From assembly GCF_052425735.1 (NCBI RefSeq), contig NC_135763.1:10788001-10852000 (forward strand): a stretch of DNA of 64,000 bases, given 5' to 3'. A model generated the notes under the pieces. That model did not search any database. It worked only from the letters and a program-made list of their open reading frames with translations, and had not been told where the DNA came from. Of the stretch, positions 3,135 to 35,890 are shown in pieces. The DNA comes from Oculina patagonica. Lineage: Eukaryota. Numbering within the stretch: position 1 is the first letter of the stretch; each line of letters begins with the position of its first letter. A program made the translations under genes and the position numbers.

Positions 3135-3290
3135 NNNNNNNNNNNNNNNNNNNNNNNNNNNNNNNNNNNNNNNNNNNNNNNNNNNNNNNNNNNNNNNNNN
3201 NNNNNNNNNNNNNNNNNNNNNNNNNNNNNNNNNNNNNNNNNNNNNNNNNNNNNNNNNNNNNNNNNNNNNNNNNNNNNNNNNNNNNNNNNN
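3135..3290. other. Assembly gap (N run)
   Basis: 156 N bases flanked by low-quality A/T-rich sequence. Confidence 1.
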
Positions 3291-8428: not shown

Positions 8429-8465
<37 letters not shown>

Positions 8466-11801: not shown

Positions 11802-13639
11802 TCCGCTGACAAACAAGATATGTAAACGTTATACTGTACTGTTGTAAGTTGTGTGAGTACTTGAATCACATATTGCTATAGCTTTAAGCACCTCCGTGAA
11901 TGATCTTATACCCAGTTGTAGTCAATATCTGTCTTCAAGAGCCTACAGTTAATTCTGGAAATCAGCGCAACCTACAGACTATTCACTATTCTGCTAGCAG
12001 ATAAGTGAATTATCTGTAGGTTGCGCGCGCAATGCATGATTTTCAAAGGAATTCCAAGTTCACGTTCCAAGTTCCAAGTTCAAGTTTTAAGTTCAGGTGT
12101 GGTGACCACACGTAAACTTTAAGTTGCAAACAGTAAAAACATGGCTCGTCGATTCGCTTCGACGCATTGTGAGCTATTGAGATGTGTGTTAAGATTTTGA
12201 CTGTTCTCCTTTTTATAGTTGTGGAAATCGTGTTATTTGTCAAAGAAATAAACGTTTGAACGGCATGCACGAAAGCATCGTAAATGTTGTTGTTTTTGTG
12301 TCTGCGAAAGCGTGAGCCCCATAGACGTAATGCAAAAATGGTTGTCATCCATTTGTCTTGTTTGGTCGAGTTTCTAAAAACGCTGATGCTGACACTTGAA
12401 AATAATGGAATAATATGCTACAATTAGAAGTCTTAATGTTTTTGATTAAAAGCCCGCAGATTTGTGACTCATTCAACTTTGAGAAATTTGTTTGGAAAAA
12501 GCCACCCTGGTCTGCCTAGCCGCATTTTCATGCTTTGGCCATGCTCTGAATATAAACAGATTTAATAAATATAGACATATTAAATTAAATGAGTGAAAAG
12601 TGTTTGCATACATATACGAGGATTGAATTGTATTAATATGAAAGAATATTACATAAATATAAATACTGAATTGAGTGAATATAAAATATTAAATAAATAT
12701 TAAATTGAATGAATATGAAAATCATAAATATGATAAATTGAATAAATATAAAAATATTGAATATTGCTACAGTCGGCTTGCCATATTGGGGTCTATGCAG
12801 CGCCTTGTCACCGATTTGTCCCACGTAAAAATCACCTCGCACGCAGAGACGCAACGCGCGGATGAAAAGAATCAGTTCGCTTGCGTTTGCGTGTCCACAG
12901 ACTTGCCCAACCCAGAGAGAGAGAAAGAGAGGAGGGGAGGGGGTTGGGCTACTTGTAGATTAACGGTATGCTGAAAGTTGCGAGCCATTTAAGGCAGCTT
13001 ATTTATCGTGTACCTGAATTGCCAAAATTAAAGTCGTATCATGATGTGCTGGTAGTTATCAAAAAATGGGGGGGGGACCGGCGGTACCACCGAAAGCTAA
13101 AGTCGTAAGTGGTTTAACAGGTTATAATGTTGCTATGGTAACCACTAATGTCAAGGAAATGGTCACAACTTGTTGACCAATGATTGGGCATTTGTTTTCA
13201 TAGTATTACTCTTATAGCAGTTGACAAAGAGTTGTAGTACAGACCCATGAAATAAAAAGGTCTGGAAAATACTGAAAACCGTTATCAGTCAACAAGGCTT
13301 AATTTCCATCGAAGGCACATAAAAAGGTTACCTTTACTTTCGGCAATGGTCTATAAATGGGTAAGGGTTAAGGGTCTGCGCCTTGGGCCCGAAAGAAACC
13401 TTCCGTATAAAACGTTTTTGTGTAGCCCCCACCCCCCCCCCCCCCCAGATCTGCGACTTGGAGAGCCACTGAGAATTTCTCCGCGCACCTATTGTCTTTT
13501 TGCTCTTAAAAAAATTGGCCTGTTCGGAGTTTAGAAGTCAGTCAGTAAACCTTGCCAGGGTCTGCAGTATTCATTTTCCGTACTCTGATATAATTTCGCC
13601 ATTGTCCAGATCCAAGGTAAATTCCGTATCGAGCCAAAG

Positions 13640-14348: not shown

Positions 14349-14642
14349 TACGTAAAATTTACACTTCCAAAAAGTACAGCACTTTCCGGAACAAAGCAAG
14401 GCCGATTTGTACAAAACTTGTCATAAATTTTCCTATTGTGAAACTCTTCTGGGCACGAAATAAAAGATTGTTGTGTTGTTGTTGAAATAACAATTCCATA
14501 AATTCTTGCCGTGTGCGTAATTCTGTTGTTAATTAATGAGATGCAAACCAGCATGAGTTGTTTTTCCGCAATCCCACCCATAAGCTCTTTTGTTCCCGGC
14601 ATATTGCTATTCTGCAGATTGGAATCAATCCACATTGTACTC

Positions 14643-17600
14643 ATGGGTCGACTAGCTGTATTTGCGGCGTTTTTTCTCGTCACCGTACTGGCATCGCATG
14701 TCCTTAAAACGCTGTAAGTCAAGTGCTGTTATAAATACAAAAAACGCGTTCTGAGTTGTAATAATGATGCTGCGACTAACCGGATGCGTATTGTTAGATT
14801 TTGATTCCTTTCATTTTTCAGAATTTTGGTCGGGTTTTTCACTCATGTCGTGGATCACGCTCCCGGACCATGCAAAATAATAAAAGGTAAGTTAGTTACC
14901 GGTATTAGTATCAATTAGACAGTACGTTTTAATTCAAAATCTGGCTTTACGTGTCCTTCATCAGAACCTCAAGGGATTGGGCTTGGTCACAGTTGATTGC
15001 TTACATCTGCATACACGATCGGGAAAGTGGGGGGTGGGGGGGGGGGGGGGTGGGGGTGCGTGTTGATTGTCTACATTTAAAAATGTCACGTGTCGCTGTT
15101 TAAGCTTACCGTCATAAGCTTATAACCAATTTAAGTCTACAGTCTTCATTTTTCATTTCTTACCAAATAACAACTGAATTTCTAACATCCCGTGTCTTGT
15201 TACTATCTTTCAGTGAATGGTTCCGAGGATTTCGCTCTCCTTCCTGGTGGACTGGTTTTTGTGTCGTCGGTAAGTGTTTCATTCCATAAAGAAAAATAAT
15301 GAAGGTAGTTTGCATCAGTAGAAACCTAGAGCTATGCGTAAGCGTAATAGTCTAGTTTTGCTGAAAATCATTAAACTGGTGTACTGAGTTTAGTAGAGTT
15401 GTTATAAATTTGGATCACAAATTAAAATCGTCGGGCAGACTTTTTCAAACTCAGCTCTCGTATCGTCACAAAGGACGCAAACAATTCACTGAACCAAACA
15501 ATCAAAACTCAAAGTAGATACACGTAGCCGGCACGTAGCGCGGGAAAATATGCACGAACGAGTCACGACTGGATTTGGTTTTACTTCTGATTGGCTGAGA
15601 AAGTGGTACGAGCTTTTTCACACAATCACTAAGCCTAATGATGCAAAGCCAAAGCAAATGCGACTTACTTTCGTCACGACATCCAAATGAAAACCTCTCT
15701 ATTTACTGTGGGGTTTCCCTTTTGGTTATCAAACAGGGGCTTCGCTACAAGATTGGCATGTGGTACGACCCAGTGCTTGACACACGAGACAGTAAAGTGA
15801 TGACATTCGACTTGAACAAGCCCAGTCAAGATCCAGTTGAATTATCACTGAAGAACTTTAATCGCACGGGATTCAACCCGCACGGGATCAGTGTTTATCG
15901 GGATCCATCCTCGGGTACGGTGTCGCTGTTTGTGGTGAATCACCGACCAGACGCTCAAGCCATTGAAATATTCGACTTCGAGCGAGACACTCATTCATTA
16001 ATTCATCGCCGCTCCGTGGTCGACGAGTTGATTTGGAGTCCAAATGACTTACACGCAGTAGGTAAGTAAGGCAAAGTAAAAAAAAATATGTTTCATGTCC
16101 CCGCCCGCCTCATTTTTGGGGGCCGCTTCTCTTTTTTTTTTAATAATTGTTATTGGGAAAGTTGGAGCAACAAAACCAACAGGCGTTACTCCTCAATTAA
16201 GTACAGATAAAATTTTGTAAGATATGGCTTTTGTCTGCGTTTTGATACGAAATCAGAGCAAAATTTTTAAGGCCTCGGCGCACTAGGTCCGTACTGGATA
16301 GGTCAGGATTGATTTTGCAAGTTCGCTTCTGGAAAACTTGAAGATGGAGGAAATAACAAATAACAAAAAAAAGCACCCGTTCACACTCTTTTTTACAAAA
16401 ATTTGGACAAGAAACATTTTTTTCTTTTACTTGGCCTAACAATGCATTTTTGATACTCCTTTGACTTCAACTGACCGACCTACTCAACCATCTACTTTAC
16501 CACAGCTTCACCCAGGCTAACCCGTCCACCATCCTCCCATATATGAACATATCAGTTCATTTAACAATTTTGACGCAGACTCGTTCCCAGTCGCTCCCTT
16601 GGCGGTTTTGACTAGAACGCATTGCATCAAGGGAAGGCCGAACGAAAATCGGGTAGCAGTGAATTTGTTTAGCTTTGTCGTAAAATTGAATTGTCAATTA
16701 TGTATTTAGAACTAAACTTATTCTTCCACTTGGAATATCGTGGCTGCGCGCAATGGCTCAATAGTTGAATTCTTAATAAAATTTGATAGTTTCTAATTTA
16801 TTAATTTATGACCAAAACTACCAATATATCTTGATTTAATATTGATAGACCTACTGGACTATGTTCAGGCAATCCCCCCCCCCCCCCCCCCCCTCTCCCC
16901 CGGCTGGACTCCATATTTTGTAAAAATACATGATATCACTTTTTAGTGATCCAAATTATTATTATTATTGTTTTCTTTTCCTCGCAGGTCCTAACAGTTT
17001 CTACGTCACAAACGACAAATACTTTCACTTTGACAGCACCTTTCTGAACTTTCTTTACCTTTTTATTCTGCACAACTGGCTCTATACAAACATTGTGTTT
17101 TATGACGGATCTAAGGCCATTGAAGCGACAGGAAGAGTTCATCCTAATGGTATTACCATGGATAAAGACGAAAGGTTGGAGTTCCTCGATTATATAGCGA
17201 TAACCAAATTTGTGACCAGTTGGATGTCGTATGTAGTTTAATTCTGCCTTTAGCTAAAACTCTGAAGCTATAAGATAAAGAGTTACCAAGGTCGACGTGC
17301 TGGGAGGTAGCCAAAGCAGTGGCACAGAACAGGCAGTGTTGGACAGAAAACGTGACGGCCTTATGCGCCTACTGGCGCGACGAGAATTGACGATGATGAA
17401 GGTCGACGTGCAAACGGAAGAAAGTTTATGCCGTCGCGTCGGTAGCTAGTAATAAGCGTGTTAGGCCGTGTTCATACTAAGTGCACGAGCACTGGTACCT
17501 GAGCGCCAGCAGAAAATAGCGTCGTGTTCACACAAAGAAAACCAAAGTACCAAAGTACCATTAAGTGCCCGAGTACAAGGTCCGCGACTTTGTACCGTAC

Positions 17601-19402
17601 CCGAACTATGGCGTGGGCACTTGAAAAAATAATATGTTCACATTAGTGCCCAGCGAGAATCGTGCTCGGGCATTGTGCCCAAGCACCAAGTGTGAATACA
17701 ACGTAAGTCTATTTCAGGTTACTCACATTCCTGATTTCTCGTTTTGCTGCCTCACAGGTTTGTTTTTGCGTCCAATGGTCTTGGTCTTGGTGTCTCAGTC
17801 TTCAGACGTGTTAAGGACAACACGTTAGAGGTGTCACAGGTTGTTAAGTCTAAACCTTTAAGTAACTATTTCATTAGGAACTACAATGTACATGGCTACA
17901 ACACTCGAAGGAAGGCTGACCTCCATCTACCTAAACCCAAGCTTAGCCTTGGCAAGCGTACTTTTAGATTTTCTGGCACAGCCCTTTTTAATTCACTACC
18001 TTTAAAAATCCAACAAGCTGTATCACTCTCCTCTTTTAAAAATCTTGTCAAAGCCCACTTTATTCATAGCCCTTATTTACGATATTTAATTCGTAATTCG
18101 TTTTAGTTTTTAAAATCTTTTTATATAACTATTTCAATTACTAAACATAAGCTTTTAACTCTATTTTTATAACTATTTTAAACAATTAGATATTTTATAT
18201 TTTTAGAAATTGTATTTAGCAGGGCCCCTCCGGAGACCAGCCACTGTGCTGAATGGGCCACCTTGCATAAAAAAAGTTTTTCCTTACCTTACCTAACCTT
18301 ATATCAGTGTGCAATACTGTTCTTAACAGTTTATTAATCTGTCAGTCCTGCCTCCCGGGGTGGGTGGGTGTACTCGCTAAACTGGACTAAACAAAACATT
18401 CCGGCCTCCCGAAAGTGGTACCTTTTTCAATCAGTGTAGGCATATAAATCGGAGAACGGAAACCAGTTATAGGTATTTAAAAAAGCCTCTGAAAACATCA
18501 CATGTAACGCCACCGAAGTATTTTGAGGGGTTTGTAAAACTGAAAAGTTTAAAGAAAAAAGTTTTAGTATCCCTTTTGTAGTCACGTGAAAGGGGGACCA
18601 TATTCTATCAAAGGTACATGAAAGCGTACAACCTTAATTTTCTGTTAAAATAGTAAATAAAAGGGTAAAAGTCTGGCCCTCCGGGAGGAGCTTCTCGTGT
18701 AAAATCCCCCCAATTTCTCTATCGTGGGGTTGCGACGCAAAACTAACTTATGGCGTTGAGGTTGTCAGGGAAAAGCCAGGTTGCTAGCTCAGGGTGGATC
18801 CAACGCCGTGATGTATAATTCTAGTTTAACAATAATTCCTCGCATTTTCTCGTTCATTAGATTGCGTTAGAAAGAAGGTACTTACGTTATGCTTACCTTT
18901 AGACCATAGGGAGAGAGAGCCATTTTTCTCCCCAAGCTTAAGGTGTGTTTAGTTCAGCTCCATCGTTTGAGCCACATGAAGCTCCCAGAAGACCATGGTC
19001 TTCACGATGGCTCGTTCAGTAAGCATAGTAACTTGCTTACCAAACTGATCTAACTAAGTTTTTTTCTTGTGTAAACAGGTGATTAAAGTTGGTTCTTTAG
19101 TTGACAACATCAATGCCGACCCTGTGACGGGAAATCTTTGGATAGCAGGAATCCCTAGAGCCTTGGATATAACCGCTCACTCACAAGATCTCAGTCATCT
19201 TAGTCCCTCTCAAGTCCTCACGGTGCAGCTGGGAAAGCCGTCTACATCCGGCATAGCTTTCCCTGATTACAAGGTTCGCGAGGTGCACAAGAACGATGGG
19301 CGGGAACTAACGGGTGCCACGTCTGCGATTGTTTATAAGGATCGCCTGCTTATTGGCTCTGCATTCAGTAACATGCTGTATTGTGAGGTGCAGTTCTACT
19401 GA
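14643..19402 (+). CDS. PON: Paraoxonase/arylesterase paralogue B, 7 exons, 369 aa
   Basis: Exons 14643-14713, 14822-14886, 15214-15269, 15737-16061, 16988-17174, 17758-17839, 19079-19402; same exon lengths as paralogue A, GT-AG, no stops. Confidence 0.95.
17301..17398 (+). mobile_element. 5'-truncated LINE 3' end (RTE-like, GAT-repeat tail) with 13-bp TSD
   Basis: AAGGTCGACGTGC at 17288-17300 and 17399-17411; the empty site is visible in PON-A (caaggtcgtgcaaatgg, ~9711). Confidence 0.8.
17464..17704. mobile_element. Small MITE (Harbinger-like termini GGCCGTGTTCA...TGTGAATAC)
   Basis: Imperfect terminal inverted repeats with internal AAGTGCCCGAG-type repeats. Confidence 0.55.
17855..18300 (+). 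mobile_element. CR1/L2-type LINE 3' fragment in PON-B intron 6
   Basis: Translates HGYNTRRKADLHLPKPKLSLGKRTFRFSGTALFNSLP..SFK (typical LINE ORF2 C-terminus), then an AT-rich 3' UTR and a CCTTA-repeat tail. Confidence 0.85.
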
Positions 19403-19935
19403 TCCACTGCAAACTTACTGCCAAACAAACAACGACTTATGTAATAACTATACTGTATTGTAACCAATTGTGTGAGGTACTTGAATCACTCATTAGTATA
19501 GCTACAAGCAATTTCCGTGAATGATCCTGGTATTATATGGTTTCAATGTTCAGTAACAAGAAAAGATTGGCTAAGAGAGTCCATCCTGAGCTATTTTTAA
19601 GATTTAAAAATCAATCCCCTTGTCATCGTCAGTGAGGCTTCGCAGTTTCTTGAACACGTCTTGCGAGGCCGACTATTTAGCCCTCTAGATCTACAAAAAA
19701 GTTCTATTGGCTTGTCACGTTATCTTTCAAAAATGATTGCGTGACGAGCCAAAAAAATGTCTGCGTAGAAGGCGAGCTCCACAAGGACCGACTATTTCTT
19801 GTCACGTTCATTGTGGACAGATGCACATAAAAAGGACGAAGAATTGAAAAATGGTGAAAACTAAAGCAGAAAAAAAAATTATTTAAAAATGTATTTGTAA
19901 AAATACTTCACCTGGCTTCTCATTGTATAATCAAG

Positions 19936-20028: not shown

Positions 20029-20169
20029 TAGGGCGCTTTCCATTTGTCAGAACTGGCCGGCCTGACCGGTATATTCGAGAACGGAATTCCGTTGTTAGTC
20101 AGATTCGTCCTGTCAAATCAGTCAAGACAGGTATAATATACATTGTTGTGGTGGATTTGTGGGAAAATC

Positions 20170-21095
20170 CACAGGGGACCCAAACGCTGTATTAGTTATT
20201 CATAATCTTAAAATAAAAAATGTTCTTATTTACCTGCGTTCCTGTGTCTTTTTCATCGGTTTGGGGAGATTTGAATCAGAGCGAAGGCGGTTTACGTTGC
20301 GAGTCTTAAACGGTAATCACTCAGCAATGTCAATACGACGCGCCTCAAGTTTCAGTTATTATTAACTCTAGTTACTAACACCATTAACTATTAACTCTCC
20401 TCGCGGGAGAGAAGAGAGAAGGAGAGAGAGAGCTCTCTTCTCTTCTCGTGACCGTTAAATTGAAACACAAAACTCCCCGCGAGGAGAGTTAATAGTTTTA
20501 AAATGGTGTTAGTAACTAGAGTTAATAATAACTGAAACTTGAGGCGCGTCGTATTGGCATTGCGACATACTGATTACCGTTTGATTAGACCACAGGGCAC
20601 AGAGGAGTCAAGTTTGTCCGCAATTCAAAATCTCTACCGTGCAAAACGACCTTCAAAAGCTTTTCAAAGCGATCGTGTAAGCCGTACGCGCTACAACGCC
20701 GTCATGCGATACTTAATGTTTACAGATTTGTCTGGTCTGATGATATCGTATTCGTACCCTCATGCGACATCCGCAGACAGCAATGTTTGTGGGCGTTACA
20801 GAGAGTCAGAATACGATATCACCAGACGATCTGTAAACAAGTATCGCATGACGGGGATGTATCACGTACGCTTTAATACACGATCGCTTTGAAGGTTGTT
20901 TTGCACGGTAGAGATTTTGAAATGCGGACAAACTTGACTCCTCTGTGCCCTGTGATTAGACTCGCAACGTAAACCGCCTTCGCTCTGATTCAAATCTCCC
21001 CAAACCGATGAAAAAAGACACAGGAACGCAGGTAAATAAGAACATTTTTTATTTTAAGATTATGAATAACTAATACAGCGTTTGGGTCCCCTGTG
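20170..21095. mobile_element. Foldback MITE (CACAG...CTGTG termini, 7-bp TSD; P-element-like) nested in the Harbinger element
   Basis: TSD GAAAATC at 20163-20169 and 21096-21102; arms are near-perfect inverted copies over ~240 bp once the inner insert is removed. Confidence 0.9.
20591..20954. mobile_element. Second CACAG...CTGTG MITE nested in the first (7-bp TSD)
   Basis: TSD ATTAGAC at 20584-20590 and 20955-20961; TIR CACAGGGCACAGAGGAGTCAAGTTTGTCCGCA. Confidence 0.9.
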
Positions 21096-23293
21096 GAAAA
21101 TCTCGTGCAAAAGGTCCATTTCACATTCAAAACCACTGGACCGGCTGGCCAGTTCTGACTAATGGAAAGCGCCCTTATTTTGTTGCACTCACTTGTGAGA
21201 TCTTGTGATTAGTCGACCCGTTCTGACCTATTGATTCGCGCGCTAATGTCTTACTGATGTCTGTTATCCTTTTTACGATTTCATAAATTGTGTATTTTGT
21301 TAAGGAAATAAACTCTTGAACGGCATGCGTGACAGCATTTTTATTGTGTTTTGGTGTTTTGTTTTAAGGCTGCATTGTCGGTCCGATGTTGACCGTTTAT
21401 TTTGTTACCTCAATATGTTTCTTTAGACTACTTGTCTTCGCAAATGTGCGGTTTTGTATAGGTAATTAGATGATTTTGAGTGCAAGTACGAGAAAAACTT
21501 GTGATGACTTATTAATGATATTCATGAAAAAAATTGCGAGAAAGCAACAAGTGCAAAACTCATACAAAAATTATTTTTTCAAACTCGGCAAATATCATCG
21601 CGTGCTCAGTCAAAACAAGGTCAAAACCCAAACAACAGGTTTCTCAATGTTTTAAAAGTTTTTTAAGCCGAAAAACTGACTAAACAGAGAAAAAAACTGA
21701 GTTTCTCGAATTTCGTCTGCTTCTAATACTTGTCGAGGTTTGCTTGGGCGCTTTCAACGTCCAGCCAAGTGAAGCTGTTTCGCTTTCCCTTCAACACTTC
21801 GTCGGACGAAACAATTCTCTGTCTAGTGCTTATAGGTTCTGTTCTCTAATGCACCTACAAATGTTAAGCTCGAGGGTGGGTGGGGGTTGGGGTCGGGTCT
21901 CGATCGGGTCGGCCCAACCACGGGAATTTTATCACGATGTCTGTCCCCAGGGTAGAGTTTTTGAACGTACGCGATGCTCCCAGGGTGAGGATTTTGATCA
22001 TACGTGATGTCCGCGTCCCAAGGGCAGGGATTTTTATCGTTTGTGACTCACACAGTGAGGGAAATTTGACATGGTCACCATCTTGAGTTTCTGCCATTTT
22101 GGAAAATACCCAGAAGGCATTTGGATGAGCTTCACGTGTTCGAGCAATGGCTGAACGAAAGGTGAGTGATACATGTTATCTATCTTTGAAGCTTTAGAAC
22201 ACATAGTGTTTTTATGTTGCATTTAATTTTGAAGGAAATACTCGCACAGAACCCGCTCATTCATTAAAAATGTTCTTCCGATCCTACTTGGCATGATTTC
22301 ACAGGATGCTCTGCCACGAGTTTGTGTCAGACATAGCGAAAGATTTGTGTTTTTTTGATGTAGGACTTTCTTGTTAACAATCGTGCAGCATAAGCTGAAA
22401 AACCAAGGATTGGCTAAAAAGCAAGTTTTCTTACCCGGAAAGATGCTAAAAAAAGAAGTAAACCACTTTTAGCTGTTATGTAAAAATGTTTATTGATTCA
22501 GTCTTAGTTTGATTATTACACTCCTCTTGTGTGCAACAAGGTTTGAAGGACATTTGACCACCTTCTCTTGCTCCCGGGTGGAAATTTTGACCAATTATTT
22601 TGTCCTGGGGTTGGAGAATTTCCTTTTTTATTTAAGAAAATTTCAAAATCCCAACCCCGTCATCCGTCTCTGGTATAAATCGAGCCAATCTTTTCTTGTT
22701 GCTGAACATTAAAACCCCCTTACAAATAATTATAACACCAGGATCATTTACGGAAACTGCTTGCAGGTCTCAATGGAGTTAACCGCTAGCCGTAATATGA
22801 CCAACAATTTAGCCGTTAGGCGTAAAAATTGAAACAAGTTTAACCGTTGGCCGTAAAATATGTTATAAACCGTAACGACCAAGCCAAGAAGTTTGGAAAA
22901 GAGTCAGTTGACCAGAAACTTACCGCTTCGTGGAATTAAGCGGCAAAATTATCTAAAATAAAACAAACTAGATTACATGTACTTTTTCATCCGGGAGTGG
23001 TTCTAAGACCTTAAAATACGTTTTACGACAATGAAAATTAACTTTTAACTTTTTGCAACAATGGAAATGGTCTTCATCAGCAAAGTGACTAAACAACATG
23101 TCACCATGTGACAACGTGGACCTCACTTCGGTGATAAAGACATTGCGATACGGTCGAAAGATTTGTTTCTAACTTTGTTGAGACATTTCAACAAGAATTT
23201 ATTTCAAGTTGAATCATTTACGAGGACGAATGAACAACGTCACTATAGGTATTACATAACTCGTTGTTTGTTTGGCAGTAATTTCGCAGTGGA

Positions 23294-26200
23294 TCAGTAG
23301 AACTTCACCTCACAATACAGCATGTTGCTGAATACAGAGCCAATAAGCAGACGATCCTTATAAACAATCGCAGACGTGGCACCCGACAGTTCCCGCCCAT
23401 CGTTCTTGTACACCTCGCGAACCTTGTAATCAGGGAAAGCTATCCCGGATGTAAACGACTTTCCCAGCTGCACCGAGAGGACTTGAGAGGGACTGGGATG
23501 ATTAAGATTTTGCGAGTGGGCGGTGTGATCCAAGGCTCTAGTGATTCCCGCTACCCAAAGATTTCCTGTCACAGGATCAACATTAATGTTGTCAACAATA
23601 GAACCAACTTTAATCATCTGTTTAAGAAAGAAAAAACTCAGTCAGTAAGTTTTCGCGCGGCGCTTAATGGTTAGGCGACGACTGGAAACACGAGTGCAAC
23701 AGTCCCAGACCTCCACGCGCACCGCGCCCCAACCAGTAGGCGACGTGACTGGACTGAGTAAAAAACTGACTGGTAAAATAAAATAATCATGATAATAAAA
23801 CAACAATATTGCACACTAAGGTTTAAACAACAATTGCTAAATGAATTCACCTGTGATGCCTCTAACGTGTTGTCCTTACGGCGTCTGTAAACTGCGACAC
23901 TAAGGTCATGCAAAGCGGACGCAAAAACAAACCTATAAGGAATCAAAAAGAAAAATCAGAAATGCGAGTTTACGTGTGCTTGGGATATTATTCCGTTTAG
24001 TACAAATTGTCTATATTTCAAAACCAAGTGCTGTAAATAACAGGCTGTAGAACTGAACTGTTTAATTAAATGCTAAATAATAACCTATAAAATATTAACC
24101 TTACCAGGTGCGAGCGTCTGGATAAAAAGCAACTTAGCGCAAGCCATTTTCGAAAAATTCGTAGCAAATTTAAAAGTTCATTATGCAGTTGACGCGATGA
24201 CCTTATAGGTAGACTTTTGGTTTATGGATCAAGTGGTCTAGATCGAGAGCAAGCCGTGTTGTGTTATTGGCCAAGACATTTTGCTCTCAAAGTGCTTCTT
24301 TCCAGTGAGAGGAATAAATGGGCACGGTCGAACTGATAGGGCTACCTGGCAGAGCTCTGAGGTGGTGGTGGTGGCGGGGGGGGGGGGGGGGGGGGAGTAA
24401 CCTACAATGGACAAGCACCATATCAAAGGCGAGACACACATTCATTAATTCATCGCCGTTCCGTGGTTGACGAGTTAATTTGGAGTCCAAATGACCTACA
24501 CGCGGTGGGTAAGTACTTGAGCAGCAATACTCCTGGCCACTTCTCACTACGGAAACCAGAAGTCACTGACGCGCCGGCACAAACTCTCTTCCGTACTTAC
24601 GACCTTAAGGAACTCTGTCAGGGATTTTAACAGATTTTTGAACAGCCAAAATTTATATTTGTGTCGTAGGAAACCTAAACATAATGGTCCATGTTTTAAA
24701 AAATATGCTATATTAGAGCACTGAAACTGTTTACAAGCAGTTTTGGCTGCGGATGACTTAGGATGAAAATGGATTGCAACTTGAAAAATTAGAGCTGACC
24801 TTTTCAAAGCTGATTTTGCGTGTCATTAAAAATCTATATTTATGGCCGAAGTTTGATTATAATCTTCAGATTAAGGCTGTATCCTCCATTAGATGTTCAA
24901 AGATAATGGTTTTTTATTGGTCAAGTTGCCTACAACTAATTTCGGAACAGTTTAGACCAAAAATTTGCAAAGCTCTCGTGACGTAGCTCCTTTAAAAGTC
25001 TTTATAGCACAGCTAAGGCGCCCCCCCCCCGGGGGGGGGTACTCCCATAAATTTCGAATAGGGGTGTGCCGCCAAGGTTCTTAAACCCTGACCCTATTTA
25101 AGGGTAAAGAAAGCGAAAATTGATACCCTTTTAAAGGCCCAAAACCGAAAAATGACACCCTATTCAAGGGGAGGAGAAGCGTTCCATGACGACCCAAATA
25201 ACGGCTTACCGCGCACGGCAACACACAAATCTCTATCAAATCGCTTTACTAATAACTGAACAGTAAATTCAATTTTAAAATACCTTTTTTGGTTTAGCTG
25301 GGCGTTTATTTTAACTTATAGAATTTAGGTACCCTATCTAAGGATCACACCGGGAACTCATTGCCAAAAGGAGCAAAAATGATACCCTATTTAAGGACCG
25401 AGAACCTCAAAAACCATACCCTATCGGGCGACACATACCTATATAGGCCACATATGGGAGTACCCCCCCCCGGGAGGCGCCCGTTCTGATTAGTTAATTT
25501 AGCGTCTACTATTTGTGAATTCTTCTCTGTTGCATCAGAGTAACCTGCCTGAAGCTATAAGTTACAATCTGTAATGCTACGTACGCTATACAGCACATAC
25601 AAATTGGGGTATTATTGGACTAGTCAAACTGAACGCTTTCGGCCGGTTTTGGGACCCTGTAAATAACTGCATAGCCGACGAACTCCAACCTTTCGTCTTT
25701 ATCCATGGCAATACCATTGGGATGAACTCCTCTTATGGCTTCGATGGCTTTAAATCCGTCGTAAAACACGATGTTAGTATGGAGCCAGTTGTACAGAAAA
25801 AATCTAGAGACAACGTTCAGAAAGGAGCTGTAAAAGTGAAAGTAATTGTCATTTGTGACGTAGAAACTAGCAGGCCCTGCAAGAAAATAGAATAACAGTA
25901 AAAGTGAGTCCGCTATGCGAACATGTGTGGACTTTCATTTGATTAAAAGTTGACATTATGAATTAATCAATGAGTTACTAAATTAATAAATAACCAGACA
26001 TTTGATTCGTTTTAATATGCGAATCAAAAATGCTCAAGCCGCACAGAAAAACAAACACTGCGGAAAGTGAGACAAAAGTGTGAAAAAGAGAAACGTGACC
26101 TACCACCGCAGTTGTTCAGCTCATTAGATATGCAGATTTTAGCCGTCGCGATTGCTATTTCACTTTTCATCTACGCCACCGCTGCCTTTGAAGTTGTTCC

Positions 26201-29200
26201 TTGATGTATATTTTCCAGCCACCACACGCTCTTCGAAAGATGTGTCAAAAAAGGCTTCTAGACTCAAGAATAAAGTGCGACTTACTCGATACTGATCGAA
26301 TTTCTGGGTTTACTGCCTTGGCTGCCCATCTCAGACATCTCACCGAAACTTCGGATTCTCCGATCACTGTCGAAAACTTCCGAAAGCACTAACCCGAGTT
26401 ATCACGGAAAGTGACCCCCCAATCGGAAAAAACTGCATGACAACAATGTGTAGACTTTAAAGTCCACACAAAAAACGAAAGAATTTTTAGGATCACTGAA
26501 AGGTAATGTAATGTTTTTTTTTTTGTTACAACAGGATAATGTCGCGGACCCAGGCCCATCCGAGGGGTGCATGTATATAGCCCAGTGCGTCTGTCAATAC
26601 CAAAACTAAGGTATTCATAGGGCCAATAACTAACATCAACCAATCAGATTACCCCATTGCCGGTCCAATAATTTCTAAGTATTGAAAGGAGTATTCCCAA
26701 ATGATCACGCCCGTAATTTGTGCATTGTAATGACTTAGACGGTAAAAAATAAACTTGACACGCATGGAAACCCTCTTGTACTTTTAATTGGTTTGTAAAA
26801 TTACGTTTGGATGGTGATTTGGGTCTGTGTGTTGGTAGGTGACTGACAAGGGTTAGAATGGAAAGTTGGTGGATGGGAACTGGGCAGGGGTGGCATAATG
26901 AGTATGCGGGATTGGGGGGGGGGGGGGGTAGGTTGAATGGGCCTGTGGGTGAGAGGGTGGTTTAGGCTGCGTAGATCCGTGGGTCCCTATGTGCCACGAG
27001 GCATGAGCAGGATAGGTGAGATCCGTGGGTATGTGGGTGTATGAATGGGTTGTTCGTTCATTGTAAGAAGAGTATCACAAGTAAGTACTTACCCACTGCG
27101 TGCAGGTCATTTGGACTCCAAATTAACTCGTCAACCACGGAACGGCGATGAATTAATGAATGCGTGTCTCGCTCGAAATCGAATATTTCAATGGCTTGAG
27201 CGTCTGGTCGGTGATTCACCACAAACAGGGACACCGTACCCGAGGATGGATCCCGATACACACTGATCCCGTGCGGGTTGAATCCCGTGCGATTGAAGTT
27301 CTTCAGTGTTAATTCAACTGGATCTTGGCTGGGTTTGTTCAAGTCGAGTGTCATCAGTTTACTGTCCCGTGTGTCAAGCACTGGGTCGTACCACATGCCA
27401 ATTTTGTAGCGAACCCCCTGTTTGATAAACATTAAGAAAAACTCTCAATATAAAATAAATAGAGCGGTTTTCACTTGAGTGTCGAATGTCATTTGCGTTT
27501 GCTTTGGTTTTGCACTGCTACGCTTAGTGATTGGTTTAAACAACTTGCGACACTTTTTCAGTCAGTCAAAAGTAAAACAAAAATCATTTGTTACTCGTTC
27601 GCACACCTTTCTCCTTGCTTAGGCTATGTTTATACGGGACGGGTTCCAAACGGATCCGGTCCTAAAATCGGGCCGGATAGGGCTTCTGTTTACATGGAAC
27701 CGTTTGGAACTGATCCAGGTGTTTACACGAGACCGTTATGGAACCGGTCCGTAACGGATCCAATACTGGACCTGCAAAACAACAGGCCCAGTTTTGGATC
27801 CGTTCTGGACCGTTTCCAGAACGATCCGGATCCCGTGTAAACAGAAGCCCTATCCGGCCCGATTTTCGGACCGGATCCGTTTGGAACCGGTCCCGTGACA
27901 GAAGGGAGAGGAAATTATAGAGGAGCTTACAGGGAGGTTCATGTTCCCTTGCTACCCCCCAAAAATCCCTTGTGTTTCCTTGTTCCCAAAAACGTTTTTC
28001 CCAATTTTGTGATCCCTAGTTGTTCCCTAAAATATCAGAAACAAGCTTTTGTTGCCGTGTTCCTTTTATTTCCTTATTTCCAATTATTTTATGGCCATGT
28101 TCTCTTGTTCCCTGAAACTCCTAAAGACTCAGCCCGACTTCTACAATTCAAAACCTCGTGCACGCGAACTCGTGATAAAACTCCTTTTTAATTAATATAG
28201 AATAATTCTAACAAAACTAGACCATTACGTTTAAAATAAAGGTTTCCACTGAGACAAACTACATTCATGATAAAACAAACACTTACAGATGATACAAAAA
28301 CCAGTCCATCAGGAAGGAGAGCGAGATCCTCGGAACCATTCACTGAAAGATAATAACAGGACACGGGATGTTAGAAAGTTAACCTGAGAACAACGCACCT
28401 TAGCTGAAACTAAGGACGTTATCCGCATGGTTCGTTTTAAATTGTAGGATTTTTTAATTTTTTTATTGTGGTATCAGTCAATTAAGGAATTTTTATTTTT
28501 TATATATTTATATCATAGTTAATAAAAAAATTCAGTAGTTAGCATTTTACATTTTTTATTTTAATTTATCTTGATCATATTTTTTTCACGTAATAAAGTA
28601 TCTATGTATCTAACATCTAATCTATCTAATTCAGTTATCGATTTCCTCTGGAGTTCCGTCATACATTTACTGTATAATTTAACCATCGGTAACTCGAAGC
28701 AGTTTTCGTTTCCCTTCAGGGCATTTCCTATATAATTCAAAGTTATTCCTGAATAATTTTACTCTCGGTAATTCGAACCATGCCTGACACTAATACGTGA
28801 CAAGTCAAAACCAACAGTCACTGTGGTCCAAAACATAGAATTCATTTTGAAGCAGCCGTGTAATGTTTGTTCTTTTTTGCATTAAACAAAACGTGTCAGT
28901 CCAGCTTCTTTGGTTTAGGGTGCGTTTAACTACAATGATTGTATCTTTATAAAGCGTTGCTGCTTAAAAAATGTCATTAAATCTCTTGCGTCCCTTGAAG
29001 TGCAGTGTGCACGGCACCGATCTATATAGTAGTTTAGAAATGTATAGTTTCATTTTTACTCGCCTTCTCTATACTGTAATGGAATTTGATAACTGAAACC
29101 TTTTTCAATTTCCAATCACAAATCACAAGCCTATTTTCCTTCAAGTCACGAATCATGTATATTTTTTAGACCATTTCACGAGTCAGGTATTCACATCTAC

Positions 29201-31194
29201 ATTATCATAGGTGGAGAAGCACAAGGGGAGGGGGGACAGGGGGGCTGAGCACCCCCCCCCCCCTAAGTAAGTTTGCGCAGCATAAAATTGGTTTCATTCT
29301 CGTGATCTTTTTACAAATTGTATCATCAGGATCGTGCTTGGCGAAATAATATGGTGTAGGTCTTTTAACGAAACTCCTCTCCCAAAAACGCTACTAGGAG
29401 AGGTCATCAAGGTGTAAGGATTGTATTTGCGGCGACTTCCGTGGTGGTGGGTGGCACTTGGCTTGGTGCACGAAGAGCCCCCCACGTTTCAAAATGCTCC
29501 ATCGCCTCTGATTATTGATGAAGATGAGTTTTAAGAACTTACCTTCCAGTGGCCTAGTAGCAAGACTCTTTGATTTAACAAACCCATAAATCGACCCATA
29601 GTAAGAGGGTACCCTCACTACTAACCGATGGTCGAGCCGAGAGAACGTGTCCTCCATTCATGGTCAATCTTTGGCTTTATGAATCGTACGTTTGTCCATT
29701 TTGGTTTACTACCGTAAAGTAGGTAATTTCATTTTCGGTTTTCACGAATGATTTTTGTCAGAATCACGGATCACAGTCTTAAAAATAAGCAGATCACGCG
29801 TTATGTTAGGGTGCGTTTCTTTGGGAAAATCCAAAATTGGATCATTGATCTCAGATCACACGGATACTTTGCTCCCAAAGAAACGAAGAATCCGAAAACG
29901 GATTTTTTGCCATGACAACCCCGTAAACACATTACACACAGAACATAAAATATCAGCACAAATTTATTTTTCGTCGAATGTATGCTAGCTAAAATAATTT
30001 AAGCATACAAAATCTTTGGAAAGATTTCCGCACAGGACCCTACATTAATTTATATGTATGCAACTATTTCATACCATCACTATACATAAACAGCAATCAT
30101 GAAAAGAACGAATCAGTCAGAAAATTGTATGCATAATTAATGTAGGGTCCTGTGCGGAAATCTTGCCAAATCTTTTACAAAAACCACACGTCGAAGTAGA
30201 TCTTCTTTAGCGTTAAGCAGAATGTGCCGAGAAAGCATCTAAGAGCGAAGAATGATTGCGAAATGATCAGTGCAAATTTCACTCGTGACAATTTCAAAAG
30301 GATACAACTTCCGTAGGCACACAGTCGCTGTTCTAGAAAACCTGTATCCCGTTTAAAATGATACTACATACCTATCTGAAGCTACCGTTTCCTTTCATCG
30401 TGAAATATTTTTGTATTTTGATCGAAATAACCGCCTAAAACTTTCCGTATGGCAGTGTTTACAAAGAGCGAACCTGTATTTTCACAGCAAAGACCGCTGG
30501 GCCAAGGTACTTTTTTCGAATCCTTTCCCAAAGAAACGCACGGATCGTGAATCCTAAAAATCCGGATTCAGATATGATCTGATGTATCCACTCGAAGTGT
30601 GGATTCTTCAGATCATTGATCCAAGATTAATCCATTTTCGGATATAGTTAAAGAAACGCAAAATCCGTTTTTGGATCAAGAATCCGGATTTGGATTTTTC
30701 CCAAAGAAACGCACCCTTTACATGCCTTTAGACTGGCAATTAACGGATCACGGCTAGACTTGGGGGCGGAGAGAGAGAGACCCTGGAAACGAGGTTGAGA
30801 CTTAAGCAGTATTCACATGTCACGTTCTATTTTTTGCTTAAATCACGCGTCACGCAAAACCCTTTACCACCCTGCTTGAGGTCCTTGTAAACACGAAAAA
30901 CCAAATTTCTTGAATCGAAACGTACTTTAAAGTAACTTACCTTTTATTATTCTGCATGGTCCGGGAGAGTGATCGACGACATGAGTGAAAAACCCAGCCA
31001 AAATTCTGAAAAATGAAAGGGAATCATTGTCCGACATTTATCATTTGTGCATCAACTCAGAACGCGATGTTTTTCGTATTTACATCACGTTTACATGTAC
31101 ATGTATAGTATCACTTGACTTACAGTGTTTTAAGGACATGCGATGCTAGTACGGTGACGAGAAAAAACGCCGCAAATACAGCTAGGCGACCCAT
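23294..31194 (-). CDS. PON: Paraoxonase/arylesterase paralogue C, 7 exons, 369 aa (inverted relative to A and B)
   Basis: Exons (minus) 31194-31124, 31005-30941, 28342-28287, 27417-27093, 25876-25690, 23932-23851, 23617-23294; same exon lengths as A/B, GT-AG, no stops. Confidence 0.95.
24429..24518 (+). pseudogene. 90-bp inverted copy of the PON-C exon 4 3' end plus splice donor, inserted in a decayed SINE in PON-C intron 5
   Basis: 87/90 identical to the reverse complement of 27083-27172; carries PON-C-diagnostic bases (cgTtccgtggtTgacgagttAatt). Confidence 0.95.
24609..24991. mobile_element. Kolobok-like MITE (TTAA-flanked, purine-start TIRs)
   Basis: TTAA|GGAACTCTGTCA...TGACGTAGCTCCT|TTAA; imperfect TIRs. 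Confidence 0.55.
25024..25474. mobile_element. MITE with CCCGGGGGGGGGTACTCCCATA termini
   Basis: Clear TIRs, flanked by an AGGCGCCC duplication, with internal ACCCTATTTAAGG repeats; decayed relatives at ~10976-11310 and ~18354-18710. Confidence 0.85.
27622..27898. mobile_element. Palindromic MITE (GGAACCGGTCC/GGATCCG repeats) in PON-C intron 3
   Basis: ACGGGACGGGTTCCAAACGGATCCGGTCC is mirrored by GGACCGGATCCGTTTGGAACCGGTCCCGT. Confidence 0.75.
29809..30716. mobile_element. Harbinger-type non-autonomous element in PON-C intron 2
   Basis: TIR GGGTGCGTTTCTTTGGGAAAA / TTTTCCCAAAGAAACGCACCC flanked by TTA/TTT; internal hairpin ~30016-30170. Confidence 0.8.
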
Positions 31195-31538
31195 GGATGC
31201 AGTGTGGATTGATTCCAATTTGCAGAACAGCGACAGGTCACAAAAGAACTGATGGCAGCCCACGACAAGAATGGAATTGGTATTGCGTGACATACTTTGT
31301 GCAATATTCTGGCTGTTCACGCAATCTGTCCTCCCGACCCGCAATAAAAGCTTGTGCTTGTTCACTAAATGACCAAAAATGTCTGTTTCCTTTCTCCTTT
31401 TTCCCTGTCAATTTTTACATGCGGGCTTTCCATGATCCATTTGTATGGAGAAACCAGTTGTTCTGGTGAAATTATTCCTTTTTGTTTCGTTTCCTCAGAA
31501 ACGATACGGTATTATTTTGGCTTCGATGTGAAAACAGT

Positions 31539-32211
31539 GGGGGCTACTATCCAATCAGAAGAACGGTCGTAACCACAAAGTAAATACGTTTGACCGAAGG
31601 CAATTAATTTCGTAAAAACATGTTCTTCAAATATCGGAAAGATATTCTTCAGCATGATCAAAAAATATTGAGGTTCGTTGCAAACAGAAGTATCTGACGA
31701 CTCCAATGGTTTTAAGTTTGATTAAAGCGATGTATTGTAAGAAAACTACAGAAAGCTCTCGTGGCGTTTAATTGTTAAGTAAACATTCTAGCGATTTTCT
31801 GAAACGGAAGTAAATTTCCACCAATCAGTGTTTGCAAGCGCAAACAAAAACGGGATGACTTGTCGTGTTTGCTCGCACGGGGGGCTGCTATCCAATCACA
31901 AGAACGGTCGTAACCACAAAGTAAATACGTATGACCGAAGGCAATTAATTTCGTAAAAACAGTCATGTTCTTCAAATATCGGAAATATATTCCTCAGCAT
32001 GACCAAAAATATTGAGATTCGTTGCAAACAGAAATATCTAACGACTGCAATGGTTTTAAGTTTGATTAAAGCGATGTATTGTAAGAAAACTAGAGAAAGC
32101 TCTCGTAGCGTTTAATATTATTCTGAAACGGAAATAAATTTCCACCAACCAGTGTTTGCAAGCGCAAAAAAAAACGGATGACTTTGCATATCTCGTGCTT
32201 GCTCGCACGGG
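31539..32211. repeat. Tandem direct duplication of a ~340-bp unit upstream of PON-C
   Basis: Unit 1 31539-31878 and unit 2 31879-~32211 both begin GGGGCT(A/G)CTATCCAATCA and are colinear with scattered substitutions and short indels. Confidence 0.9.
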
Positions 32212-33862
32212 AGAAGTGCATATTTGCAGGTGACTTACAAAGTTAATTTCACTTCATGTAACAGAGGAATGTATAAATGTGGGAGATTGCCATATTCTAT
32301 TTGTACAGGAAAATTCACGGCATCTTCGAAGTCACAAACAGCGCGAATACACGCAAAATTGCGTGGGTTTTCGCGTGGATGTACCCGGAATTGCGTGATC
32401 AGTGTCACGTCGGCGTCGCAAAAACATTCGAGTCTGCACGGGAAGTTGAGAGGTTAATTCTGTTCAAAGTTTAAATTTTGTATGGACAGTATCGTATAGC
32501 AAGGTGTGCAACTGCCGTGTCGAACTAAATTCGTCTCCTTAGTTGATGTAACGCTCAACATTAACTGCCGTTGCAACTGCTGGAGCAGATTTCTGGGATT
32601 AAATTAATGATAATTTTTTATAAACATTATTTGGATTATTCAAAGCCATCGCGGTCTGATCGAAACTCCACGGTATCGCCAAAAATGCAAATCGTTATTA
32701 TCAGTGTTACCAATGCAAGGCTGTTACACTGACAACAGAAGCAACTTGGCTGTGTCTTATTCTGTGGAGATAATTTTTTGCCGGGAGAGCGTGCAGCGCG
32801 GATCGAGCAAAATACAATCCTGGTATGACTATATATAACATATAACATAAAACTTTCTTTAAACTTAAATTTTGCTTAATTAAAAATCCTGGTTAAAAAT
32901 CTGTGTATGGTAGCTTTTTACATTAATTTGCCTGGTTGTTTACGTGTCTTTGTAAAGTGACAACAGGCATTTGATTTTGAAGAAATGGCTTCGAAACAGT
33001 GTGCTTATCTCTGTTCTTGTCGACCAGGGTTTTGGTTTGTCTTGAATTTGGCATTTATTTGATTTGAGCATGTGATCAACTCAGAGAAGTATATACCTCA
33101 AGCTTTTTGTCAAAAGGTAATAATGTCATCTACGATTAAAGTGTTGTTTTGCATTTTATCAGAGATCAGTAGTCACAAAACACTTTATTTATAGAACTGA
33201 TTTATTTTAGGATTGTTTGTTTAAAAAAAAAAATCATTTAAATTAATTGAATTACTCTGATCTTGCATTTCACTCTTGTGGTTTGATGTTTCCCCATATT
33301 GATAGGAATATATTTAAATATTTTCTGTATGTTATTTTTCCATTCATGTAACATTCAAAGTTATACTATCAGGTGCCATTTTTAAGCAAAAAAGTGTTCT
33401 GCAGAAATAAAAAAAATTCATTTTAATTTCCACTGGATGAGTAAAAACGATAAAGGCAAGCTCCCTTCACTTAACTTAATTTGGAGAGAAAGACACATGC
33501 TATTTCTATAAAGAGAAATATTTATGTGTTACTTGAACTCTTGAAAGCCAAACTGCAGCAGGACGTAGTTTATGTCTCCTTTACATAAAATGGACAGTAG
33601 GTGTTAAATGGGAATTTAAGTTACTACTGAATATGAAGTTCTTTTTTTCATTCTTCACTCGTGCATAAATTCGCCAAATTCAACATACACTAGGAAGTAA
33701 ACCACAAACCCACCTCTCCTGTTACACTATTCTCACCTTTTCGCAATCTGGAAACGAAATACTATTTCTTTTTGAAATAGCTGCTTGTTCACCGTCTGCC
33801 GGAATGCTCGGAATTCCGAATATCACTGTACCATTTTGCTTTTTCGCACGACTTCTCGCACT

Positions 33863-34060
33863 CCATTGCATTCAGTGGTTTATTAATGGTATATGAGCCA
33901 TCATTAATAAACCACTGAATGCAATGGATGAGTCCTAACAAGGACGAAACAGCTGTCCATGGCTGCCACTCTACGGGTAATAGGCTGTGCGCATGCGTAC
34001 AGGTCTTGGCCAGGCCGTGGAGATGTGTCGTGTGACCATTGCATTCAGTGGTTTATTTTT
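33863..34060 (+). mobile_element. Penelope/retrozyme-type LTR remnant with 5'-damaged hammerhead ribozyme and local inversion
   Basis: (G)ATGA-GTCC-taacaa-GGAC-GAAAC-AGCT-GTC at ~33927-33957; preceded by a palindrome (33863-33927) built from the element's own end sequence CCATTGCATTCAGTGGTTTAT, which recurs at 34037-34057. Confidence 0.7.
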
Positions 34061-34346
34061 TTTACATATACCATTGACCACCAAAATGGTGGCCGATACG
34101 CGTCAACGAAAATAGCTGGGGGGCTTAAATATTGCAATTCTTTGGGCGTTTTTAATAAAACAATTATTCCACTCGCGCTTGTTGGATAAGAGATCGTTAT
34201 AGCCAACTCGGCGCTACGCGCCTCGTTGAGACCCCGTCTATCTACCATCTCACATGAACTATTACAGTGCTCCACGATGAAATACGCGGTGGAAATTAAA
34301 GTTTTCAATATTGGAACACACACACACACTCGTTCCGTACCGATTC

Positions 34347-35626
34347 CAATCTCGAGCCCAGAGTGACCCCCGGCCCCGGCTCCGCGATCCGTCAGCGGTT
34401 GGTCAGCGGTAGGGTCGCCGGGACTCACTCTGGGAAACTGAATTTTAATTCAGTTGCCTACTGGTCCTCACAGAACAATAGAAATCAAGACGGAAGTCTG
34501 AAAATCCTCCCCGGAAGTAAACCAAACCGGAAACCCTGGAAAAGCATTTTTTGTTTTCCATGGCCAAATGTTGAGATGTATCACCTTAATTTTGTAAAAC
34601 AACTAAGAACTCGTGATATGGCGCTACATAAATGAAGTATTTTCTAATTCTACCATTTTTGAAATCAAAAGATGCCATGAATAAAAAAGGACTTCCTTTA
34701 AACGTCAATTCTGAACGGAGTTTTAAAACAACAGCGACGGCGTCACCAAGGACAAGGTCGATTGAAAACTCAATTTATAGTTGACTTACAAATCTCGCTA
34801 GAACTACTGTTTTCATTCAAATCTCCGTTACGGTTGAAAAACTGAATATCGCAGACAGTGCTTGATTCAAAATAATAACTAATAAAGAAGAATTTGAACA
34901 TTACGCGTTGTTGTTTTGCTGAAAAAAAGCACGTGAATTGCGTAAATTACGTGCACGAGCTGAGTCGCCGAAATGCTAATTACACCTTTTAAATAGCGTT
35001 GACTGGTGTGGCCTTTCACGTCTTTATTAATATTATCGCCATTCGACGAGGAAAAAATTATTTGCTCGAAAACATGTAATCTATCATGAAAAGATGCGCT
35101 GTCAGCGAGAGCCTCTGAAATATACGAAAGTCGCCAAACAAAACTTTTTATCAACAGAACAATAGCTTGTCCGTGCGTTGTGCATTATGTAAATGTCTTC
35201 ACCGTCGTCTGCAAAACAACATCTGACACACGCACGCAGTCTTCACAGGCGGAATCCTGGAAGGCAAATAAGATCTTTGATTTAAAACCAATATAGCAGT
35301 ATGCTCAAGAAAGAGACTAACGGAAATCAAAACACCAGACCCTCTTTTGTTAACTCTCTCTTTTGTTAACTGCAGAACGTTTTTGTTACTTTTGTTGCTT
35401 CGATAAACACCAGTTCTGTCGACACTGTGTTAGAAATAGTTCAACTTTCTCGATTTACTTCCGTTCTGGGAAATTTACTTCCGCTTAGACCTGAGAGCAT
35501 GCGCAATAAAAACCGGAAGACCAAGGTTCTACCTGAAATCGACCTGAAATTGATCTGATCAATTCCAGTTTCCCAGAGTCCATCCCGTACCGCTGACCGA
35601 CTAGACGGACTCTGGGCTCGAGATTG
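34347..35626. mobile_element. Non-autonomous DNA transposon between the divergent PON-C and hydrolase genes
   Basis: TIR CAATCTCGAGCCCAGAGT / ACTCTGGGCTCGAGATTG; flanks TACCGATTC and TACCGATTA (8/9 duplication). Confidence 0.85.
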
Positions 35627-35756
35627 TACCGATTACCATGCTTTTGGGATCTCTGGGTTCCAGGCTTCGCGCGCAACAGGTGGCCGCGTCAAATCAGACC
35701 AGTCCTACGCGGAAACAAAATGGCCGCTTCATAAACAAACGCAGAAACAATCGACG
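35450..35756 (+). promoter_or_regulatory. Probable promoter and first exon of the beta-lactamase-like gene
   Basis: ETS-type ACTTCCG (x2) and CCGGAAG, NRF1-like GCATGCGCA, YY1-type AAAATGGCCGC at 35717, donor G|GTAAG at 35756/35757. Motif-based inference only. Confidence 0.55.
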
Positions 35757-35890
35757 GTAAGATTATCTTTTTATTGAACTCTAATTTGATGTTAAGGCCT
35801 CCTACAACTATCTGTGCTTTAGGTAGTCACCAAATATATTGCAGATCAACTCTGAAGAGTTCCTACACGGGTCCCACGCCTGCTACACAG

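Follow-up and report, generated by a model that had tools for sequence, protein, structure and literature searches.

How an intron comes to hold an inverted piece of an exon of its own gene, and whether such a piece does anything for that gene, are the questions raised by a paraoxonase-like gene of the coral Oculina patagonica. The stretch analysed, hereafter the window, comprises 64,000 nucleotides (nt) of contig NC_135763.1 (assembly GCF_052425735.1, positions 10,788,001 to 10,852,000 of the forward strand; all positions below are counted from its first letter) and contains three paraoxonase-like genes, PON-A, PON-B and PON-C. Intron 5 of PON-C, a gene of the minus strand, carries an inverted copy, 90 base pairs (bp) long, of the end of exon 4 together with its splice donor. 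The initial annotation of the window, made from the letters alone, had taken the copy for a templated insertion left by break repair, and had proposed that the long-range duplex that it creates in the pre-mRNA is a paralogue-specific regulatory switch. The evidence set out below argues for a young, lineage-specific templated insertion, in which a break in a repeat of intron 5 was sealed with a 90-nt inverted patch of PON-C, and which is probably neutral or slightly harmful and not a selected switch.

The plus-strand segment 24429-24518 is the reverse complement of 27083-27172, with 87 of the 90 positions identical and an identity that stops at once on both sides. The BLAST E value of the match, about 1e-37 to 1e-39, is incompatible with chance, and the coordinates and the identity agree with the initial annotation, whose factual statements all hold. 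The copied stretch continues from the exon into GTAAGTACTT, the first 10 nt of PON-C intron 4 with the splice donor, and on the plus strand it reads like the sense strand of the PON-C exon 4 end and donor. The copy begins 1,171 nt downstream of the exon 5 donor, and copy and source, the two arms, are 2,564 nt apart within one gene. All three mismatches between them fall on synonymous third codon positions (ACG, CTG and GCA) and would become, in an RNA duplex, G-U pairs at 27163 and 27103 and an A-C mismatch at 27097; the two G-U pairs and the A-C mismatch at a synonymous site recognised earlier are therefore as described, and the other two sites are synonymous as well.

The whole 529-Mb genome holds five matches to the 90-mer, namely the copy itself, PON-C (97%), a PON-A haplotig on the unplaced contig C556 (94%), PON-A (93%) and PON-B (92%), the last three covering bases 1-87 only. 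The copy has in common with PON-C three letters private to this gene and the intron letters CTT, which PON-A, PON-B and the PON-A haplotig do not have, and from these shared letters PON-C, as unspliced sequence, is identified as the template. The donor exon is still intact in the 369-amino-acid (aa) open gene model. No such copy was found when introns 5 of PON-A and PON-B were searched, and there are no further templated patches among the non-transposon repeats of the window.

The site of insertion can be reconstructed from a repeat family. The flanks of the copy belong to one member of an abundant interspersed repeat (916 candidates at first look), and in an alignment of 30 members the consensus, GCATCCCATCCAGGGG followed directly by GAGTAGAAATACTCCTAGTCGC, is continuous across the insertion point, reading CATCCAGGGG and then GAGTAGAAATACTCC without a break where the member in the window is interrupted. 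The flanks ...ATCAAAG and GAGCAGC... adjoin directly in this consensus, and the window member misses at most 2 nt at the insertion point. Its internal G-run is expanded to (GGT)4GGC-G20, and the G20 run (24376-24395) ends 33 nt before the copy. Inspection of the junctions and flanks revealed neither a target-site duplication (TSD) nor a poly(A) or other A-tract, and the homology between donor and target amounts to 0-1 ambiguous nt at the left junction and to none at the right; microhomology-primed copying, tried by eye in an "AG" priming register, was rejected because it fails by one base. No other copy of the insert-bearing repeat was found in the 529 Mb searched. The initial annotation had placed the insert in a decayed repeat resembling a short interspersed nuclear element (SINE). 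The repeat host stands, given the continuous consensus; the likeness to a SINE is a description only, since neither a tRNA-derived SINE head nor an Rfam family was found in 23900-25100.

The insert is present in sequence data other than the reference. In the DNA run X1, an independent short-read assembly, a 156-nt contig (24490-24645) crosses the right junction with 0 differences and includes 29 nt of the copy with its private letters at 24498 and 24504, and the depth of the same run covers 24406-24451, spanning the left junction. Breaks between X1 contigs fall at 24490 and 27112, some 30 nt into the sequence common to copy and source, which we read as the behaviour expected of a 31-mer assembly graph with both copies present, a word size of 31 letters being assumed.

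These data also bear on the age of the event. In X1 and in X2, a run from a sister taxon, the source exon has C at 27097 and T at 27103 (plus strand), which are the letters of the copy, and in X2 these calls lie in a contig that runs into PON-C's own intron 4; only these two calls, tied to the intron-4 flank of PON-C, were used to infer the allele. The A at 27103 (sense strand) is also found in PON-A, PON-B and the PON-A haplotig. Judged by these letters, two of the three mismatches between copy and source represent polymorphism or later change in the exon, and the copy differs from the alternative source allele at one position only, by a CpG transition at 24438. The insertion event is young, since the source allele of X1 and X2 agrees with the copy at two of the three positions of mismatch. 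In X2 (k-mer depth about 20) no contig lies on 24406-24451, and a 672-nt contig is aligned only up to 24355 and continues for 196 letters beyond; for an empty site, the letters required to reach about 24641 number 73 + 123 = 196, and the X1 contig ends close by, at 24645. This fits an empty allele in the sister taxon, as an inference from lengths, the joint itself not being displayed.

A separate set of X1 and X2 contigs, on 27140-27391 in exon 4, shows seven differences from the reference, all of them letters of PON-A, PON-B or the haplotig, at a depth 2.5-3 times the unique level. They are the only contigs there. On account of these letters and this depth they were rejected as PON-C alleles and are probably collapsed paralogue sequence, the contig of PON-C itself having been filtered out; alternatively, exon 4 of PON-C has undergone gene conversion in the individuals concerned.

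Comparison with other corals fits an event within one lineage. Homologues of the exon-7 open reading frame (ORF) in other coral assemblies reach 88% identity at best, at the loci L051 and L052. The latter contains a single PON gene with an intron 5 of about 470 nt, in which no inverted copy of its own exon-4 end was found, and the former is cut just upstream of exon 7, which is 88.8% identical to that of PON-C versus 84.6-84.8% to those of PON-A and PON-B. When the window (21175-35962) is compared with L051:80-1589 and L052:9981-14584, the PON 3' end in both loci faces a beta-lactamase-fold gene, at a distance of about 1 kb in L051 and of about 4 kb in L052, where the single PON lies between a seven-transmembrane (7TM) receptor gene and the beta-lactamase-fold gene; at the corresponding interval of the window about 14 kb intervene, including the inverted PON-C. 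Since the PON genes of L051 and L052 face the beta-lactamase-fold gene without this segment of about 14 kb, the PON expansion and the inversion of PON-C are lineage-specific. Metagenome pattern scans with the left flank and with the PON-C-specific exon core gave no match, and neither did exact look-ups of two junction-spanning ORFs and of the exon-7 ORF.

The intact nearby donor, the loss of almost nothing, the blunt-type junctions and the lack of retroelement marks fit the anatomy of a break-repair patch, and the break repair put forward in the initial annotation is likewise consistent with the precise inverted insertion and with a G20 tract only 33 nt away. We infer that a double-strand break arose in the repeat member of PON-C intron 5, plausibly through replication stalling at the adjoining G20 tract, that unspliced PON-C sequence at a distance of 2.6 kb was then copied into a 90-nt patch, and that end joining, with little or no microhomology, fixed this patch in inverted orientation. 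The by-product is a pre-mRNA with two complementary arms, one formed by the exon 4 end with its 5' splice site and the other lying in intron 5, able to form an intramolecular double-stranded RNA of 80-90 bp. The most likely molecular effect would be hyper-editing of the arms by ADAR in some nascent transcripts, perhaps accompanied by some Dicer processing and by circularisation or skipping of exon 5.

Several classes of known insertions share part of this anatomy. Like the class-2 templated sequence insertions (TSIs), or filler DNA, of humans (PMC5110952), the copy is a short stretch from an intact donor with end-joining-type junctions and without TSD, poly(A) or endonuclease-type target, and like them it is heritable and may be polymorphic. 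It differs from them in having its donor 2.6 kb away in the same gene and in including an exon-intron boundary; the human class-2 insertions mostly derive from distant donor loci and have been attributed to RNA templates (Onozawa and Aplan; PMC5110952). In C. elegans, templated inserts arise in the repair of G-rich tracts and of breaks linked to replication (PMC4032859, PMC4490562), and the polymerase-theta end joining described there resembles the present case in the G-rich tract beside the break, the nearby template and the minimal junction homology. Its inserts are typically of a few to a few tens of nt with small deletions, whereas the copy has 90 nt, at most 2 nt were lost and the template is kilobases away. 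Template-switch mutations (PMC8794818, PMC10710096) also create in one step a reverse-complement pair able to form an RNA stem, but they act locally, over tens to hundreds of bases, and in most cases substitute for the target sequence, whereas here one arm consists of coding sequence and a splice donor. A local template switch was rejected, since the copy is purely inserted and 2,564 nt separate its arm from the other, and so was retro-insertion mediated by a long interspersed nuclear element (LINE), or class-1 TSI, given that TSD and poly(A) are lacking and that the insert contains intron sequence.

Some points weigh against the account given above. As a rule, polymerase-theta inserts are much shorter and have their template within tens of bases, and template-switch mutations draw on sources at tens to hundreds of bases, as against 2.6 kb here. 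The empty site of X2 would follow from the length of one contig and a gap in depth. As to the by-product, transcription reaches the complement about 2.6 kb past the donor and 1.36 kb past the intron-4 acceptor, so that U1 binding, and even removal of intron 4, may often come first. Finally, a DNA template and a pre-mRNA template are indistinguishable from the sequence. The patch could accordingly have been made from nascent or unspliced PON-C RNA, through a cDNA patch or by direct RNA-templated break repair, which we consider rather unlikely. In its favour, human class-2 insertions have been reported to be RNA-derived (PMC5110952), donor and target lie in one transcription unit, whose pre-mRNA would be tethered at the break, and the blunt-type junctions, with 0-1 nt of homology, are more in keeping with a captured free fragment than with synthesis primed by microhomology. 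Spliced mRNA is excluded as template because the patch includes 10 nt of intron, and a retroelement signature is lacking.

Whatever its template, the insertion has given the transcript a considerable potential for pairing. The 90-nt arms of the reference allele are predicted to form a duplex of -170.6 kcal/mol (-176.8 kcal/mol with the other source allele), and the exonic 80 nt alone, as they would be after removal of intron 4, one of -152.6 kcal/mol. When the 3,038 nt of pre-mRNA between the start of exon 4 and the far end of the copy are folded at minimum free energy (MFE), 89 of the 90 cognate pairs form, and the long-range pairing suggested by the initial annotation is upheld by these predictions. 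The modelled duplex buries the donor GUGG/GUAAGU, and its loop takes in intron 4, exon 5 and the first 1.2 kb of intron 5. Arms that bracket the acceptor and the donor of an exon are the arrangement of repeat-driven back-splicing, and long-range RNA pairing controls splicing and back-splicing in inverted-repeat circular RNAs and through 5' splice-site stems such as those of MAPT exon 10 and SMN2. The present arms, like these, bracket an exon or would hide a donor; unlike in these, one arm belongs to an exon, and the distance between the arms is large in view of the time that U1 needs to bind.

The copy also has features of an editing complementary sequence (ECS) of ADAR, being an intronic complement of an exon within one pre-mRNA, with a predicted duplex of 90 bp. 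The exonic arm contains 19 adenosines, 13 of them recoding, including those of an Asn and an Asp that align with N168 and D169 of PON1; N168 is one of the residues that bind the catalytic calcium. At least four loci with an ADAR-type deaminase domain (A_deamin) are present in the genome. Adenosine-to-inosine (A-to-I) editing of repeats and coding sites has been documented in a coral (PMC5850803), and classical recoding sites are edited before splicing through duplexes between the exon and an intronic complement (PMC10404624). As in the Q/R and R/G sites of GluA2 (PMC10404624, PMC7045468), a downstream intronic element would pair with an exon end and act before intron removal, and as in the R/G type the 5' splice site is included in the pairing. 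Known ECSs are conserved, imperfect and have been shown to direct editing, whereas the copy is new, near-perfect over 90 bp and predicted only, and it is absent from PON-A, PON-B and the L052 orthologue. A near-perfect duplex of 90 bp favours promiscuous hyper-editing. The likely effects would rank as partial hyper-editing of the arms first, small RNAs second, circularisation or skipping of exon 5 third and masking of the donor fourth. It is doubtful, though conceivable, that the copy acts as a newborn intronic complementary element, causing clustered A-to-I recoding of the active-site-proximal exon 4 end in carriers and possibly also exon-5 circularisation or skipping, or small RNAs acting in trans on the 92-94% identical PON-A and PON-B.

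The available RNA data consist of consensus contigs, and a consensus cannot show partial editing. Among the joints listed (15 of 91) no exon 4-exon 6, intron-retention or back-splice joint was seen, and these consensus contigs show no cluster of A>G changes. The run X15, from the sister taxon, is RNA by its pattern (depth 8-39 on exons and 0-4 on introns), and its PON-C-like contigs on exons 4, 5 and 7 fit inclusion of exon 5 and exon 5-6 splicing, the contig of exon 5 extending by 11 letters in a manner that fits exon 6. There is no excess of T>C changes (plus strand) in X15, a taxon that may lack the insert. The run X20, putative RNA of the assembly's own species, has no contigs on any PON exon, the 94%-identical exon 4 of PON-B included, and is for this reason uninformative on the insert.

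A selected, paralogue-specific switch, in which the duplex tunes PON-C output by masking the exon-4 donor, looping out exon 5 or recruiting ADAR, is improbable on this evidence. Its geometry and modelled energetics fit, with arms that bracket both splice sites of exon 5 as in back-splicing, recodable adenosines in the exonic arm, ADAR-type genes at hand and classical recoding based on exon-intron duplexes (PMC10404624), and skipping of exon 5 would lead to a stop in exon 6. None of the outcomes that it predicts is seen in the available RNA contigs, however, and the element is about as young as the polymorphism within and between taxa. There is no sign of selection on it; it is too young for selection to have left its mark, and it is absent from the distant single-copy orthologue. 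Moreover, hyper-editing or a frameshift by skipping would mostly destroy the enzyme and not regulate it, and constraint on PON-C is relaxed by the two other intact paralogues. The copy is a well-documented structural variant, and any function of it would be putative.

The two remaining explanations question the insertion itself. An assembly or sequencing artefact, in which a chimeric read or a mis-join put exon-4 sequence into the intron, is very improbable: the site does adjoin a G20 homopolymer at which reads and contigs break, and no listed contig spans the full 90 bp with both flanks, but the exact X1 contig over the right junction carries the copy's private letters, and the X1 depth over the left junction and the two contig breaks fit two real copies. 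That the 90 bp are what is left of a dead PON copy, or of an inverted duplication once larger, hardly deserves credence, since, although PON-A and PON-B lie on the plus strand, in the orientation of the copy, and PON-C itself is within an inverted, lineage-specific segment, the identity ends within one base on each side, the flanks join into an uninterrupted repeat member, the copy is nearest to PON-C and not to PON-A or PON-B, its identity of 97-99% is far above that of any decayed relic nearby, and no further PON-derived stretches in register were seen around 24429-24518.

The templated insertion is set in the following gene context. The PON-C model is based on conservation among the paralogues, GT-AG borders and PON1 alignments, and its assignment to the paraoxonases/arylesterases follows from the PF01731 match at exon 5, the PON1 matches of exons 4 and 7 (residues 64-173, E 1.6e-14 to PON1 in the PDB, and residues 262-354, respectively) and the intact ORF. 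The coordinates of the features are collected in the table.

Table. Positions of the paraoxonase-like genes, the PON-C exons, the inverted copy, its source and its host repeat in the window.
Feature	Position	Strand	Remarks
PON-A	~4290-11808	+	
PON-B	~14578-19455	+	
PON-C	~31335-23287	-	
PON-C exon 1, from ATG	31194-31124	-	71 nt
PON-C exon 2	31005-30941	-	65 nt
PON-C exon 3	28342-28287	-	56 nt
PON-C exon 4	27417-27093	-	325 nt; splice sites and open frame
PON-C exon 5	25876-25690	-	187 nt; Pfam PF01731 (Arylesterase) match
PON-C intron 5	25689-23933	-	1,757 nt; contains the inverted copy
PON-C exon 6	23932-23851	-	82 nt
PON-C exon 7, last	23617-23294	-	324 nt including the stop codon
Source of the copy	27083..27172	-	last 80 nt of exon 4 (27172-27093) and GTAAGTACTT (27092-27083)
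Inserted copy, 90 bp	24429..24518	+	antisense within the PON-C pre-mRNA (PON-C on the minus strand)
Host repeat, left part	24256..24428		includes (GGT)4GGC and the G20 run; aligned to family members and consensus
Host repeat, right part (GAGCAGCAATACTCC...)	24519..24600		right end approximate

Of all coding exons, exon 5 has diverged most between the three paralogues, with 80-84% identity between PON-C and PON-A or PON-B, versus 86-89% for the blocks that hold exons 4 and 7, and in the gene model its removal (187 nt) shifts the frame and leads to a premature stop in exon 6. The description of a hypervariable exon whose skipping would shift the frame was therefore apt. The corresponding introns 5 measure 1,559 nt in PON-A and 583 nt in PON-B. 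A 356-bp element of PON-C intron 5 (24607-24962) is common to intron 5 of PON-A (10093-10445) at 78% identity and in the same relative orientation; a closer match, at 87%, occurs elsewhere in the genome, and the element is an interspersed repeat that was either already present in the ancestral intron or acquired in two separate insertions.

The region from exon 3 to exon 5 of PON-A has an alternative haplotype on the 4,452-nt unplaced contig C556, which is 96% identical to 6435-9318 and carries about 1.6 kb of additional sequence within intron 4. Being a PON-A haplotig by this identity, it was rejected both as a further, fourth paralogue and as a candidate donor. A 140-bp inverted repeat lies between the 3' ends of PON-B and PON-C (20168-20306 and 20958-21097), 99.3% identical, with arms about 650 bp apart that are crossed by mirrored ORFs; it could be a foldback or miniature inverted-repeat transposable element (MITE), or a trace of the rearrangement by which PON-C came to lie tail-to-tail with PON-B. 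Two adjoining inverted-repeat pairs upstream of PON-A (1997-2170 and 2649-2942; 63 bp at 100% and 110 bp at 93.6%), about 0.5-0.9 kb apart and beside the N run 3135-3290, probably belong to a small DNA transposon as its terminal inverted repeats.

Patches left by templated repair are commonly regarded as neutral scars. The copy in PON-C is a clean natural example, from a coral, of how one mutational step can put an antisense exon end and 5' splice site into the same transcript. If carriers and non-carriers exist, as the reads hint, they would constitute a natural experiment on a kilobase-range exon-intron duplex in a cnidarian, and their comparison could address splicing, back-splicing, editing, small RNAs and the origin of intronic complementary sequences. 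Should the copy indeed act as a newborn complementary element, it would show that ADAR complementary sequences, or hairpin regulators in cis, can arise in a single step of break repair.

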